The notes: generated by a model not told the origin, from the letters alone. 64,000 nt of DNA from Tubulanus polymorphus (GCF_964204645.1 NW_027437462.1:1-64000), one strand, 5' to 3'; positions 37,496-63,374 are shown, counted from the first letter of the stretch. Numbers and translations are program-made.

Positions 37496-40400
37496 TTAAT
37501 CCGGCGGTAGTAGCTCATGTAGATGGAATCGATTTTTGATATGAGGACGAACGTCTTCTTTCTGAAAAAATTCATCTCATTTTATAAGAAGATATTTGAT
37601 AATCACAAAATCTCGTTAATCTCGCATTAATTCTTACCATGGAAACTAAACTTTCTAAAAACGGTAACATTTTCATTAATTCACTATCGTTATTATCGGT
37701 GAACCAACTTTCAATCGGTATTCCATTCCATAACTACAAATAAACAACAAACAATCATTAATCATGAATCAGTTCAAAAACAAACGACAATCGCAGCTTA
37801 CGATCGTTTTGTTGTTACCTGGTAACCGAATGCTTGCGGCGAATTATCAACAATGATCGTTTTTTCGAGATCTCGACCGAGAATTTTCAGATCCTTGATA
37901 TAATTACCGTTAACACAAACGCAATGTTCACGAAACAGACGATGCCTAAAAAATATCAAATCATTATTATTATCGATATAGCGTTATTGGATATATCGTG
38001 AGGCATCTAGAAATATCTTACTTGATCCATTTTTTATCCGGATCTAAAAGATTCATCAATTTATCGGCGTAAACTTTCTTCGAAGCAGTAAATAGAATCA
38101 CTTCGAATAATTGAGAAACTCGGTTGAGAAATTCTTTAAAAAATGGTCGCGTTCGAACAAACACCTATAAATAATCAATAGTCAATCAATAATCAATCAA
38201 TAATTGAACGCTATGGTTTATTGATTACTGGTGTGTAAATAAATACCTGATACGTGACATCTTGAAATACAACAGGAAAAACAAAAGCAGCTTCATCCAT
38301 TTTATTCAGACTACAGTGAACTAATGTCTCATCCTATAATAAAACATGATTATATAACAAACAGTCGCTCCACGTGATCCACGTAGCTCCACGTGGATAA
38401 AACAACACAATACATACCAAATCTAGAACTAGTGAGAATTCTGGAGTACTGCGAGTTTTCAGAGGTAAAGCTGGAGCTCGTGCCCTCATTTCATCTGTTA
38501 ATGGTGGAAGATGCTTTATAAAATAATACCTGAAATTTAAAAGGACACAAATGAGGAGGTTGTTCAAGTAGGCAGTAGGTTCAAGTAGGTTGTAGGTTCA
38601 AGTAGGTTGTAGGTTCAAGTAGGTTGTAGGTTCAAGTAGGCAGTAGGTTTAAGTAGGCTGTAGGTATGAGTCAGGCTGTAGGTATGAGTCAGGCTGTAGG
38701 TTCAAGTAGGCTGTAGGTACGGCAGTAGGTACGGCTGTATGACATGCTGAAATACTTACGGATCAAACGTTTCAAACTCCGCATTTTCAACCGTTTCTTG
38801 CTGCGAATCGTCATCGTTGTCATAGTTACCAGTTGTATTGTTGTAAACGTCCTCAGTTTCTGGGCACGGTAACAACAATGGAACGGGTTGATCAATAGGT
38901 GGCGCCTCGTTCTCTTTACACGATGATTCACTACTCGAACCGGAATCATTCAACGATTCATCATCGTCATCGCTGAACTCTTTCGCTAATTCATCTTCAT
39001 CTTCCTCGTCTCCTAGTAACACAACAATCGCAGTCAGTTCAATTCAATTTTCAAATGAGTTTCACCCCCTGGTGTTGAAAAAACTCACCATCTTTATCGA
39101 AGTATTGAAACACCGGTGAAAACAGCTGACCTAGAATAGTTCCCTTAGTGCGTACAGGTGTCGCCGGTGGTTTCGTCGTGGTCGTTCGTTGTTTACCTAT
39201 GAGAGATGAAACTGCCGCTATCAATCTCCATTCGCTAATAGGTGGCGCTGATACCGCTACTGCTGTAAACATACACACATTCATTCACACTCATACACCA
39301 TGCATTCACCACTAGGGGGAGCTGCTGTCAGGGGATTCACTTACCTGTACTACGAGATCTGGCTTTTTGTTTTTTAGGCTGCGGTGACGATGTTATGAGA
39401 TCAGCGCCCTCTATCTGTCGTTTGTTCACCTATCAATAATATATAGATATATAATTACCACGGAAATGATTGATAATAGTTGACGTAATAGATTGTTGGA
39501 GGGGGGCGCGTTACGGACCTGTTTAACCCCAGTCGATGACCACGGAATTAAATTCTTGATTGTTGTAAATAAACCAGCAGCAGCAGCAGCGGCGGTTGTC
39601 GACGACGACGACTCCTGCAAAACAATCACACATTTTTATTACAACACCACAGAATGTGAGCGTATGACTGATCAGTCTGACTCAAGGGAGTCTGACCTGA
39701 AGGATCAGTCAGACTCAAGGGAGTCTGACCTGAAGGGTCAGTCAGACTCAAGGGAGTCTGACCTGAAGGATCAGTCAGACTCAAGGGAGTCTGACCTGAA
39801 GGATCAGTCAGACTCAAGGGAGTCTGACCTGAAGGGTCAGTCTGACTCAAGGGAGTCTGACCTGAACGATCAGTCAGACTCAAGGGAGTCTGACCTGAAG
39901 GGTCAGTCTGACTCAAGGGAGTCCGACCTGAAGGATCAGTCAGACTCAAGGGAGTCTGACCTGAAGGATCAATCAGACTCAAGGGAGTCCGACCTGAAGG
40001 ATCAGTCAGACTCAAGAGAGTCTGACCTGAACGATCAGTCAGACTCAAGGGAGTCTGACCTGAAGGGTCAGTCTGACTCAAGGGAGTCTGACCTGAACGA
40101 TCAGTCAGACTCAAGGGAGTCTGACCTGAACGATCAGTCAGACTCAAGGGAGTCCGACCTGAACGATCAGTCAGACTCAAGGGAGTCTGACCTGAACGAT
40201 CAGTCAGACTCAAGAGAGTCTGACCTGAACGATCAGTCAGACTCAAGGGAGTCTGACCTGAAGGATCAATCAGACTCAAGGGAGTCCGACCTGAAGGATC
40301 AGTCAGACTCAAGAGAGTCTGACCTGAACGATCAGTCAGACTCAAGGGAGTCCGACCTGAACGATCAGTCAGACTCAAGGGAGTCTGACCTGAAGGGTCA

Positions 40401-58875: not shown

Positions 58876-60255
58876 AGAAAGTTTTTGGATTGAAGTGCCA
58901 AACAAGAGAAATCCAGGATCTTATGTTTTTAGCCCCTTCAAATTGACCTGTAGATGTTTTTTTACAGCTGATATCAAATATTAGATCAATTTCAGATAGA
59001 AATTGATCAATTAACTAAAACCCATCAATTTTAGTAACTATCACGTGGTTTCAGACATCTACAAACATCTCTTTTCTCAAGAAGAAATTCAGTTATAACC
59101 ACGCACACAATTACTCAATGTATTAATGCTCGTATCTGTATCAAATACAATCAATGAAGCTAATAATTCCTAGTCACATTTTGTAAATTAAATTAATATT
59201 CAATTGTTGATGATCTTATTGATTTGTGTTTAAAGTCATAATTCAGTCAGAAGAATTCGAGTCTAGCTCAGTCTCAGTTAGTGCACTATCGCAGTAAATT
59301 TACCAGAATTAACTTTGTTTATAATTACAGGGGTTTTCAAAGATGTCACCAGTTGGAATTAAACTGTCTTGTTGTATTTGAAGTTATAAATGTGGGTATG
59401 TACAAGAAATAAGATTTTTTATTGTTTTCACTTTGGCCTTTAACTATTTTTTTCAATTTATCAGACAAATTAATTATTTGAGTCAATCAATTAATAAGTT
59501 GTCCGCACTCTTCTGACCCGCCACAAAACACTCAATGCTGTACAGTTTCTTGTGCCGTGGTCACGACTAGTATTTGTGATTGAATTGAATTGGTCACTTC
59601 AATACGTAATTTTGGATTTGGATTAATTAGGCGAAAATATTCACTGCAATCGATCTATTTACTCAATTTCTCATTATAATCGTTCATATTTCTTCTTTAA
59701 AACATCTAAATCGCTCCGAAATCAGCATTTATAACGAATAAATTCGGTAAAAACGGCAGAAATAAAACCGCGGAAGTCCACATAATCTACGAGTCGCGCG
59801 TCTAGAAACCTCGCATACCTAGGCTAGGCAGACCGTATTGTGCTGCTCTCAATGACTGCGGAGATTGGGTGAACTAATTACCAAACGACATACAAATTAG
59901 CTTGATCTGAGTCTATTATTCTTTTAGTTTATTTTAAATCCCATTACACATGAAATAAAAACAATATAGAGATGTTCAACAAATTTCACTCCGATACTAC
60001 ACTGTACGGTACGGTGCTGCCACTAATTTTGAGTTGGCGGCGACCTCGCGTACCTGTGTCACCTAACTGCTGTTTCACCGTACGGTGCTGCCACTAACTA
60101 CATCGACGGTTAACATAAACACTATCAGCTTTTCGAGACTAACTGCAGGCCGCGAGGAATAATACATGCCATTTAGAGCATTTCCTGAAAGATAACGATA
60201 GATGGCGCGGCTGTCTATATCGGATGATCTGTGCGTACGCCGTAGTTGTTACCTG

Positions 60256-61242
60256 ATGAATCCGTTTAAAACTGAGGTAAGTTGCATACAGTGTGGTAAT
60301 CCAGTGTAAGGGGGCAATCCAGTGTTAGGTGGTCAAGTGTCAGGAGGCGCCTCCTCATCTGTGCAGACACTACTACAGACAGTGTCATTCGCTGACTGAC
60401 AGACAGTAGTGAGTGGAGTCCATGCACCTCTCTCTCGACTCGAGTCTATAGATTGGAACTGGAAGATGATGTCGTCGGTCAATCAGTTTTTGACTCAGGC
60501 TGTTGTTGATTCAAACTGATATTTTTTCTCCTGTGTTTTCAGGTTTTATCGATATTTAAACGGTTGCACAGAACGCGATTGTTGACATTCAGAGGAGACG
60601 AACAAGCTTTAATCGGTAAATAGTAGAACCTGCTGCCACGCCTTCATGCTGGCAAAGGAAAGTTTTTTACATAAATTGTGAAATTTTAATTTTTTTGAAG
60701 CCGGAAGAAAAAAAATCAACGACGAATTTAAAAAGTTTAAAGAAACGAAAGAATTGGAAACAATTAAATACGTAAGTATTACCCTTTATTATGTGGCGCC
60801 CCCTACTGGATCTCCTGACCGTCGTATATCGTTATGTAGCTAGCGCCCCCTGGTGTGTCCCGGGTGACTAACTGTAACATAGATTTCACCACTTCCTGTA
60901 TTATAGTTATTGAAATCAGCGGAAGAAGCCGAGGAATATTTGAGGACGTCTGTGATTCAAGCTACTCAATCTAATCCCGGTGTATTCTGTAAGTATTCTC
61001 AATCTAATCCTGGTTTATTCCTAACCTAATCCTGGTCTATTAATCTAATCGAGGTTTTAAATTGATTTTCTTGTATTTTTAATTGTTGTATATTTTTAGC
61101 CGCTGAAATAACTGAAAATACAAAGTTATTAGACAACACACCTTATAAATACTCCCCCGAGGAGACAATGCGCAGGACTGAAAAACAGATACAACGACGA
61201 CGTACCAATAATAGAGACTGCGGTTGCCAGGAGAAACAGTAA
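60256..61242 (+). CDS. LYRM7: Complex III assembly factor LYRM7 (MZM1L)
   Basis: Exons 60256-60276, 60543-60615 ([20 protein letters not shown]), 60701-60771 ([12 protein letters not shown]), 60907-60988 ([10 protein letters not shown]), 61100-61242 (LLDNTPY..CGCQEKQ*), all in phase. Confidence 0.9.
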
Positions 61243-61244
61243 CT

Positions 61245-62079
61245 ATGTCTATATTTACACCGACCAATCAGAAACGGCTGACGAATGTTTCGGTCGTTCG
61301 AATGAAGAAAGCGGGAAAAAGGTTTGAAATCGCTTGTTACCCGAATAAAGTGAAACCATGGAGAAATAAAATAGAGACGGATATCGACGAAGTCTTACAA
61401 ACACATAACGTATTCATCAATGTATCTAAAGGTCAAATAGCGAAGAGCGATGAATTAAAGAAAGCTTTCGGAACAGATAAACACAGCGATATCTGTATGG
61501 AGATATTGAGTAAAGGTGAGATGCAAGTTACTGAGAAAGAACGTCACGCGCAATTAGAAGAGTCGTTTAGAGATATCGCAACAATCGTAGCCGATAAATG
61601 TGTGAACCCGGATACGAAACGTCCGTACACGGTAACGATGATCGAGAAATCAATGAGAGACGTTCATTACTCGGTAAAACCGACGAAATCCACCAAACAA
61701 CAAGCTTTAGACGTGATCCGTAAACTGAGAGAAACCGATACTATAAATGTAGCACGAGCTCAGATGAGGGTTAAAGTTACTGCTCCCCGAAGGGAGGCTG
61801 GAAAAATACGTCCTAAACTGAGAAAACTTGCATCAAAAGTAGAAGAGGAACAGTTCGAAGATGAATTAGAAATGGTAATTACTCGTAACTACTACTACTG
61901 CCACCTGTTGTCGATTTTAGGTAATTAATACTGCCCTCTATTGTTAATTTCAGGTAATACTCGTCGACCCTGGTTGCTATAGAGAAATCGATAGTTTACT
62001 ACAATCAGAAACGAAAGGTAAAGGTTCATTAGAAATATTGAGTTTAAAAGACGTCGAAGAAGGTGATGAGAAACTATAA
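61245..62079 (+). CDS. SBDS: Ribosome maturation protein SBDS
   Basis: [36 protein letters not shown]..; exons 61245-61874 and 61954-62079 (..[19 protein letters not shown]); AATAAA at ~62165. Confidence 0.98.
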
Positions 62080-62636
62080 ACGAACACCAGATGGCGCTGT
62101 TTGAATGATTGTTTTTGTAGTCAGGTCTTTAAAACCTAGTTTTGCTAATCCTGCGTTCAAATTAAATAAAGCTTTTTCTACAGTTGATATTTTTAAGTCT
62201 TTGTTTCATTTATTTCTGTGGAAGGAATTTGAGGAATTTTAATCATTGAGGAAATTTAACAACATGAATTAAAGACGAATCCCTCGACCTCCTTAAATAA
62301 TCGCTCTATTTTGTCAAATTGTCAATGTATTGAATTTAGTCCGTTGGCGCAGTCCGATCCGGAACGAACATACTGCGGTAGCCGTATCACTATTAGATCC
62401 TAGCGCTAGTTTATGTAGTGCATATACAAAGATGAATTACATTTTAAAAACACTTATGATTCACTAATGAGATGTGATTTACCTCGTAAAATACAAACCT
62501 CAATAAATTTGTAGAATTTTAAGATTCTTTATGGAGCTGAAATATTTTGAATCGACGATGAGAGAATTGAAAGTAGTTCTAGGCGCTGGATGATGACATT
62601 GACAGTTCTGTCAAAATATTTTACTAGATTGAAATA

Positions 62637-63374
62637 ATGTTTAGCAGAAAACGTGAAGCTAAACCGGATCGGACCAGTAGTAGTAATGAGTTGATGTCTC
62701 AATTCGGTTTGTTGGATCCAATCGGTGAGTTTTAAATGTCATCGTCAATCTAAGCGCAGTTGGGCGTACATTGCACTAATTAGCGACAATAACCGTTGTT
62801 GTGTAAATGTATGATGGTGTTTTTAGGAGGTCCTGGTGATGCAGGGGTGAATGATGCAGATTTAGAGGCTGAACTCGCTCTACTGATGGGTGAATCACCA
62901 GTAGCGCCACCTAGCAGTAAACGGGCGCCTAAACGTCTCAACGCGGATCAAACTGGTGTCGATATATCTCAAATAAATCGATTGGCTCTCGATAGTTTGA
63001 ACAACATCGAAGATGATGATAATGATATATCAGATACTGAAGATAATCCTGATTTATTAGCTGAATTAGCAGGTACTATGATATTAAACATCAAGTCACT
63101 GTCTAATTAATGCTGTCTAATCACTGTCCAATATCGCTGTCATCAATTAATTACAGAATTATCAGCAGAGTCACCTGTAGTTAGCGCTGCAGTAAGTCCT
63201 GATCATCAGCATATTTACACACAACCACCTACACCACCAGGTGGTGCTACTATACAACCACCTGCACCACCAGGTGGCACTTCTACGGCTGATCCGAAAT
63301 CATTGGTGAAAGAACGTATGGATAATTATACGGAGGCTTTGAGGAACGCGCAATCAGCAAATGAGTCGTCTAAA
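62637..63374 (+). CDS. CC2D1: CC2D1 / lethal giant discs, 5' exons (continues beyond the window)
   Basis: Exons 62637-62724 (MFSRKRE..SQFGL), 62827-63072 (DADLEAELALL..DNPDLLAELA), 63157-63374 (start of DM14: VKERMDNYTEALRNAQSANESSK). Confidence 0.8.

Follow-up and report, generated by a model that had tools for sequence, protein, structure and literature searches.

The stretch analysed here, hereafter the window, comprises 64,000 nt of one strand of the genome of the ribbon worm Tubulanus polymorphus (GCF_964204645.1, NW_027437462.1:1-64000), and near its 3' end two genes follow each other with almost nothing between them. The first is a LYRM7-like gene, whose coding sequence of 390 nt is spread over five exons on the + strand with GT-AG at every intron, splice phases having been tested. 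The second is SBDS, whose 756 coding nt lie in two exons separated by a 79-nt intron and specify 251 aa (Table 1). [quoted passage not shown] A preliminary description of this DNA had already placed them 2 nt apart in the same exon, and on this point the rebuilt exon models and the RefSeq proteins agree: XP_074661957.1, the annotated LYRM7-like protein, also ends at TAA 61240, and not in another exon.

Table 1. Features of the LYRM7-SBDS locus, with the contexts of its start codons (positions are those of the window).
Feature	Position	Strand	-3	+4	Remarks
AGATGGCG motif over ATG 60202	60200..60207	+			candidate promoter-proximal element of the LYRM7-SBDS unit
LYRM7-like exon 1	60202..60276	+			alternative starts ATG 60202 (RefSeq) and ATG 60256 (preliminary description)
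AUG 60202	60202		T	G	
Out-of-frame ATG in LYRM7-like exon 1	60224	+	C	A	10-codon ORF; stop TGA 60254-60256 overlaps ATG 60256
AUG 60256	60256		C	A	
LYRM7-like exon 2	60543..60615	+			LYR-motif helix; Pfam Complex1_LYR
LYRM7-like exon 3	60701..60771	+			exon model, agrees with RefSeq protein
LYRM7-like exon 4	60907..60988	+			exon model, agrees with RefSeq protein
LYRM7-like part of shared exon	61100..61242	+			ends in TAA 61240-61242; holds the sole internal AUG (61168)
AUG 61168	61168		A	C	in frame; 24-codon ORF to the LYRM7 stop
Intercistronic spacer, CT (2 nt)	61243..61244	+			read from the sequence
SBDS AUG	61245		A	T	
SBDS coding exon 1 (210 codons)	61245..61874	+			counterpart of five separate exons in the Owenia, Liolophura and Lingula genes
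SBDS coding exon 2 (C-terminal domain)	61954..62079	+			stop TAA 62077-62079; follows the only ancestral intron kept
AATAAA with T/GT-rich downstream element	62165..62170	+			likely common poly(A) signal

Gene identity and copy number

The identity of the downstream gene is clear. Its two-exon model is identical at every residue to XP_074661955.1 (ribosome maturation protein SBDS-like, Tubulanus polymorphus), it contains SBDS_N, domain II and SBDS_C in order (PF01172, E=3e-33; PF09377, E=7e-29; PF20268, split across the two exons), and named SBDS proteins from many animals share 64-73% identity with it. For the upstream gene, the 46-aa peptide of exon 5 was used as a query against a representative protein library and retrieved XP_074661957.1 (complex III assembly factor LYRM7-like isoform X2, 147 aa), which our model matches from residue 19 to the C-terminus. 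This protein hits the Complex1_LYR family (PF05347) at residues 25-81 with 24.8 bits, exactly the curated cut-off (E=2.2e-5), and the Atlas clusters nearest to it bear the names LYRM7 and Mzm1 (score 0.91-0.92, with 207-214 features in common). A word search with the same protein matched itself only. Taken singly, the exons of this gene, which are too short for family scans, gave no match in Pfam, nor did they in the PDB, and exon 5 alone gave none in the Atlas search.

In the 268-Mb assembly, SBDS and two LYRM7 exons each have this locus as their sole match. Both genes are therefore single copy and, being essential, must be expressed from here.

RefSeq also lists an isoform X1 of the LYRM7-like protein, of 148 aa, with one extra Glu at the junction of exons 2 and 3. 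It needs exon 3 to start at 60698, which is preceded by TG and not AG (region 60696-60701), and is either a case of non-canonical acceptor or an annotation artefact. On the other side of the pair, some 700 nt 3' of the SBDS stop, an ORF of 104 aa, acidic and with no Pfam match, occupies 62796-63110 (+) and is probably exon 1 of the following gene.

Start codons, AUG content and local motifs

The LYRM7 protein of RefSeq starts at ATG 60202, in frame and 54 nt upstream of 60256, the start adopted in the preliminary description and called weak there. This qualification is right for 60256, with its C at -3, but the start may be 60202, where the T at -3 is accompanied by a G at +4. For either start, when contexts are graded by the -3/+4 rule only and not by a Kozak matrix of this genome, none of the three exon-1 AUGs has a purine at -3 and the AUG of SBDS does; the A that had been reported at -3 of SBDS is present.

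The LYRM7 coding sequence of 390 nt had also been said to contain one internal ATG, in frame, and 60256 and 61168 are indeed the only ATGs in it. The 387 nt that follow 60256 have 1 AUG versus 5.3 expected at the rate of the window (Poisson P=0.03) and 6.9 expected from base composition, and SBDS exon 1 has 15 per 630 nt. When the protein is held fixed, out-of-frame AUGs in LYRM7 number 0 versus 1.2-2.6 expected, with P depending on the null used (synonymous permutation, 0.15; codon-usage resampling, 0.03; codon shuffle, 0.04). Counting from 60202, three further AUGs precede SBDS (P=0.15). The introns of LYRM7 are slightly poor in AUGs too (6 per 597 nt), and from about 60836 to SBDS the one at 61168 is alone. 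Such a paucity of AUGs fits selection for scanning, without being strong evidence by itself. The signature of leaky scanning that had been recognised at this locus is present in part only. The exon-1 AUGs have no purine at -3, but the RefSeq start is 60202, the depletion is nominal (P 0.03-0.15) and AUG 61168 has an A at -3.

ATG 60202 lies within a motif that is frequent in the window. The octamer AGATGGCG, which we take to resemble the vertebrate YY1 site, has 15 copies versus 1.1 expected. Of these copies 12 are on the + strand; their flanks are unrelated, and the extended consensus is roughly (A/T)AT-AGATGGCG-(C/T). The sites include 6428, 29188, 33171, 48957, 54509, 60200 and 62089. The copy at 60200 overlaps the annotated LYRM7 start, that at 62089 lies 10 nt past the SBDS stop, and there are zero copies from 60208 to 62088. 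Elsewhere in the window, the ATG inside the motif mostly opens just 3-17 codons. Given this enrichment and these short ORFs, ATG 60202 may exist owing to the DNA element.

Other local elements were observed in and around LYRM7. Upstream, perfect 17-nt direct repeats of TACGGTGCTGCCACTAA occupy 60010-60026 and 60081-60097, 71 nt apart and 105-190 nt ahead of ATG 60202, and are candidate promoter elements. Intron 3 has two matches to GCGCCCCCTRSTGG, the reverse complement of the CTCF-type consensus, at 60796-60809 and 60843-60856, in the same orientation and 47 nt apart; there is another at 39309-39322 (-), and chance would give none in the window. The 23 nt at the end of LYRM7 exon 4 are followed, in the region 60965-61057, by 3-4 degenerate copies of themselves in tandem, which take up the 5' half of intron 4. 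Each copy has TAATCC or a variant of it (TAATCG in the last), and the sequence of this intron looks derived by duplication of exon sequence.

Signals at the junction and routes to SBDS

The preliminary description had stated that the junction leaves no room for a poly(A) signal, a promoter or a splice acceptor. This is true of the 2-nt spacer. Yet the coding sequences beyond it could hold such signals, and they were examined for that reason. Two AATAAA hexamers, at 61344 and 61365, lie within the SBDS coding sequence, where they spell the codon pair Asn-Lys twice. The 50 nt after these hexamers are 18-22% T, versus 58% T and 72% G+T after the AATAAA at 62165. The latter, which had been pointed out as the candidate signal following SBDS, is the first past the LYRM7 stop to have a T-rich downstream element, as a genuine site should. 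Since no convincing poly(A) site follows LYRM7 before 62165 is reached, its transcripts most likely extend through SBDS.

A transcript covering both genes might be an operon that is split by spliced-leader trans-splicing, as in nematodes, tunicates and flatworms, with SBDS receiving a capped leader. The spacing would suit this, as some trans-spliced operons, such as those of tunicates, have very short or no intercistronic regions, and an AG is present at 61238-61239. However, the six AGs that lie up to 60 nt ahead of the SBDS start (61188-61239) are preceded by 30-45% pyrimidines over the 20 nt ahead of the AG (positions -21 to -2), versus 60-85% at the five real acceptors, and the lack of a pyrimidine tract at any AG of the junction counts against spliced-leader processing. 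Furthermore, cleavage at 61239 would take away the stop codon of LYRM7, no poly(A) signal with a downstream element precedes the junction, and a full-text literature search yielded no account of spliced-leader trans-splicing from nemerteans. We regard such an operon as very improbable.

Ribosomes might instead translate the whole LYRM7 ORF of a single bicistronic mRNA, terminate, and reinitiate at SBDS. The stop-start distance of 2 nt fits the geometry of reinitiation after long ORFs, for which spacings of up to 20 nt are known (PMC10275272), and the process would fix the LYRM7:SBDS ratio. In caliciviruses and influenza B, where stop and restart codons also lie a few nt apart after a long ORF, termination-reinitiation requires pairing of a TURBS with 18S rRNA (PMC10275272). 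Unlike these viral junctions, the one in Tubulanus has no UGGGA core (TGGGA in the DNA) in the last LYRM7 exon up to the SBDS start (61100-61244), and the 171 nt around it fold no better than shuffles (z=0.61). The known long-ORF cases need an element of the TURBS type. Termination-reinitiation as the main route to SBDS is hence improbable in our view.

Several further possibilities were set aside. An IRES-like or TURBS structure was rejected on the fold and the lack of a UGGGA core. A fusion of LYRM7 and SBDS by frameshifting was considered, as SBDS is in the +2 frame, which is open from 61224, but there is no slippery heptamer of the X XXY YYZ type before the stop. Readthrough of the LYRM7 stop, whose context is TAA-C, would add 12 codons and then meet a TGA in the wrong frame for SBDS. 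A scan for promoters and terminators of bacterial type was discarded as uninformative for a eukaryote.

The explanation that we tentatively prefer, at slightly under an even chance, is that of a single bicistronic LYRM7-SBDS mRNA in which SBDS is reached mainly by leaky scanning, perhaps with some short-ORF reinitiation. We infer the single mRNA and the route of translation as follows. One transcription unit would have its promoter just upstream of 60202 and be polyadenylated after the AATAAA at 62165, and splicing would leave an mRNA with both complete ORFs, 2 nt apart. Translation of LYRM7 would begin at one of the exon-1 AUGs, which all lack a purine at -3. Some scanning 40S subunits would bypass these AUGs, traverse the 390-440 nt or so of AUG-poor coding sequence and initiate at the SBDS AUG. 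Those captured at AUG 61168 would read 24 codons only and terminate 2 nt ahead of SBDS, where short-ORF reinitiation could rescue some of them. The agreement of the RefSeq models on the geometry, the single-copy genes, the poly(A) and acceptor signals, the start contexts, the single AUG in the 387 nt after 60256 and the lack of further AGATGGCG copies inside the unit all point this way, and precedents in other bicistronic genes favour leaky scanning by analogy. Other observations seem at odds with it. The G at +4 of AUG 60202 speaks against leakiness, and AUG 61168, with its A at -3, should catch many of the leaky subunits. Expression as a second cistron also seems costly for SBDS, an essential housekeeping factor. 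Finally, AUG depletion is weak once the protein is fixed, and the introns of LYRM7 are not rich in AUGs themselves. One could speculate, as the preliminary description did, that LYRM7 and SBDS are co-translated, and that the two factors might be functionally linked.

Origin of the arrangement and comparison with known systems

Linkage of LYRM7 and SBDS in other invertebrates had been put forward as a point to check, and it is absent from the three genomes compared: those of the annelid Owenia fusiformis, the chiton Liolophura sinensis and the brachiopod Lingula anatina. In these genomes no LYR gene is annotated beside SBDS, and tblastn with XP_074661957.1 within 8 kb of SBDS returned noise only; the weak matches upstream of the Lingula gene were rejected on their translations. 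Five Logan transcript contigs contain uninterrupted SBDS ORFs that are 65-73% identical to that of Tubulanus, and upstream of SBDS they have stops in all frames or unrelated sequence, with no LYRM7. The SBDS tree is unresolved around Tubulanus. The absence of linkage from the three genomes and five contigs suggests that the association of the two genes is derived, as far as this small sample of taxa shows.

The intron positions give some hints on how this came about. The SBDS genes of Owenia, Liolophura and Lingula each have five introns, which follow residues 43, 87, 154, 182 and 211 or so. In Tubulanus the first four of the five are lost and the last alone is kept. Hence, SBDS lost four adjacent introns precisely in the portion that abuts LYRM7, and LYRM7 itself retains four introns in 390 nt. 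This pattern suggests a cDNA-mediated event that may be linked to the origin of the arrangement.

The ordinary monocistronic SBDS of the five contigs and three genomes argues against a bicistronic reading in Tubulanus. The two genes may instead have overlapping but separate mRNAs. LYRM7 RNA would still reach the common poly(A) site, and most SBDS would come from a shorter mRNA whose promoter would lie within LYRM7 (intron 3, intron 4 or exon 5), the tail of LYRM7 thereby serving also as the 5' leader of SBDS. NCBI lists two genes with separate protein records, which fits, and a housekeeping gene is expected to retain efficient cap-proximal translation. In the contigs of SBDS orthologues, 118-598 nt precede the ATG and contain no other cistron; the stretch from AUG 61168 to the end of LYRM7, 77 nt, is comparable in length. 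A leader starting at about 60836 would have this AUG as its only one before SBDS. The two CTCF-like motifs of intron 3 and the TAATCC-containing tandem repeats of intron 4 could be regulatory. However, an mRNA begun upstream of 61168 would carry a uORF of 24 codons in good context that ends 2 nt before the SBDS AUG. The unit also lacks any internal promoter motif of the kind found at 60200, an absence that speaks weakly, and for that type of promoter only, against an internal start. We see separate mRNAs as a serious but rather doubtful possibility; should SBDS have its own internal start, the locus would be an extreme case of overlapping genes and nothing more.

A single bicistronic mRNA can be extended into a stronger proposal, which we hold to be quite possible though on balance not likely. 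The sole SBDS gene would be expressed obligately from second position on a capped mRNA that begins with LYRM7. In the Tubulanus lineage, the intergenic region would have collapsed and four of the five SBDS introns would have been lost to give this arrangement, which would be part of a wider set of bicistrons in this genome that pair a small gene with a large one. If SBDS is obligately second, this ribbon worm would be a natural system for an essential ribosome-biogenesis factor that relies, downstream of a mitochondrial assembly factor, on leaky scanning or reinitiation. The loss of four introns hints at how bicistronic units originate. Even in its simpler form, the bicistronic reading would tie the output of an essential 60S maturation factor, probably inversely, to initiation on a complex III assembly factor, an unusual coupling between cytosolic ribosome production and respiratory-chain assembly.

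Bicistronic genes are a known class in animals, with 196 annotated in the fly (PMC9681215), and LYRM7 with SBDS is probably an addition to it. Our literature search found no paper reporting these two genes on one transcript. If true, the pair would be a spiralian example, made of the orthologues of two well-known disease genes, in a class studied mainly in flies and green algae.

In human, a bicistronic transcript encodes L0R8F8 together with MID51 (PMC7657662), so that there too one transcript carries the ORF of a small mitochondrial assembly factor ahead of that of a larger, unrelated protein. Yet L0R8F8 is the 70-aa product of a uORF in the MIEF1 5' leader, and not LYRM7. L0R8F8 is itself a LYR-motif protein. 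The Drosophila genes stoned and Snapin and the bicistronic loci of green algae combine a weak first Kozak context with few AUGs (PMC11291117). They resemble the Tubulanus pair in this suboptimal first context and in the order of a small ORF followed by a larger one. In those loci both the single transcript and leaky scanning were shown by experiment, whereas in Tubulanus they are proposed from the DNA, with an AUG paucity that is nominal.

The closest parallel, the Drosophila sloth1-sloth2 gene (SMIM4 and C12orf73 in human), has a spacer of 5 nt, a weak first Kozak context and leaky scanning demonstrated by reporters, and both of its products act on complex III (PMC9681215). For the Tubulanus pair leaky scanning is a proposal drawn from the sequence. 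In the fly, two paralogous peptides of 79 and 61 aa form one complex, and their linkage is ancient, from choanoflagellates to lamprey, whereas the proteins of the Tubulanus pair are unrelated (a LYR protein of 129-147 aa and an SBDS of 251 aa), belong to different compartments and are encoded by genes unlinked in the other taxa checked. The likenesses are nevertheless several. Two complete ORFs share one exon, separated by 5 nt in the fly and 2 nt in the ribbon worm; the first start is suboptimal and the second better; the protein encoded first acts in mitochondrial complex III; and the orthologues are unlinked in jawed vertebrates.
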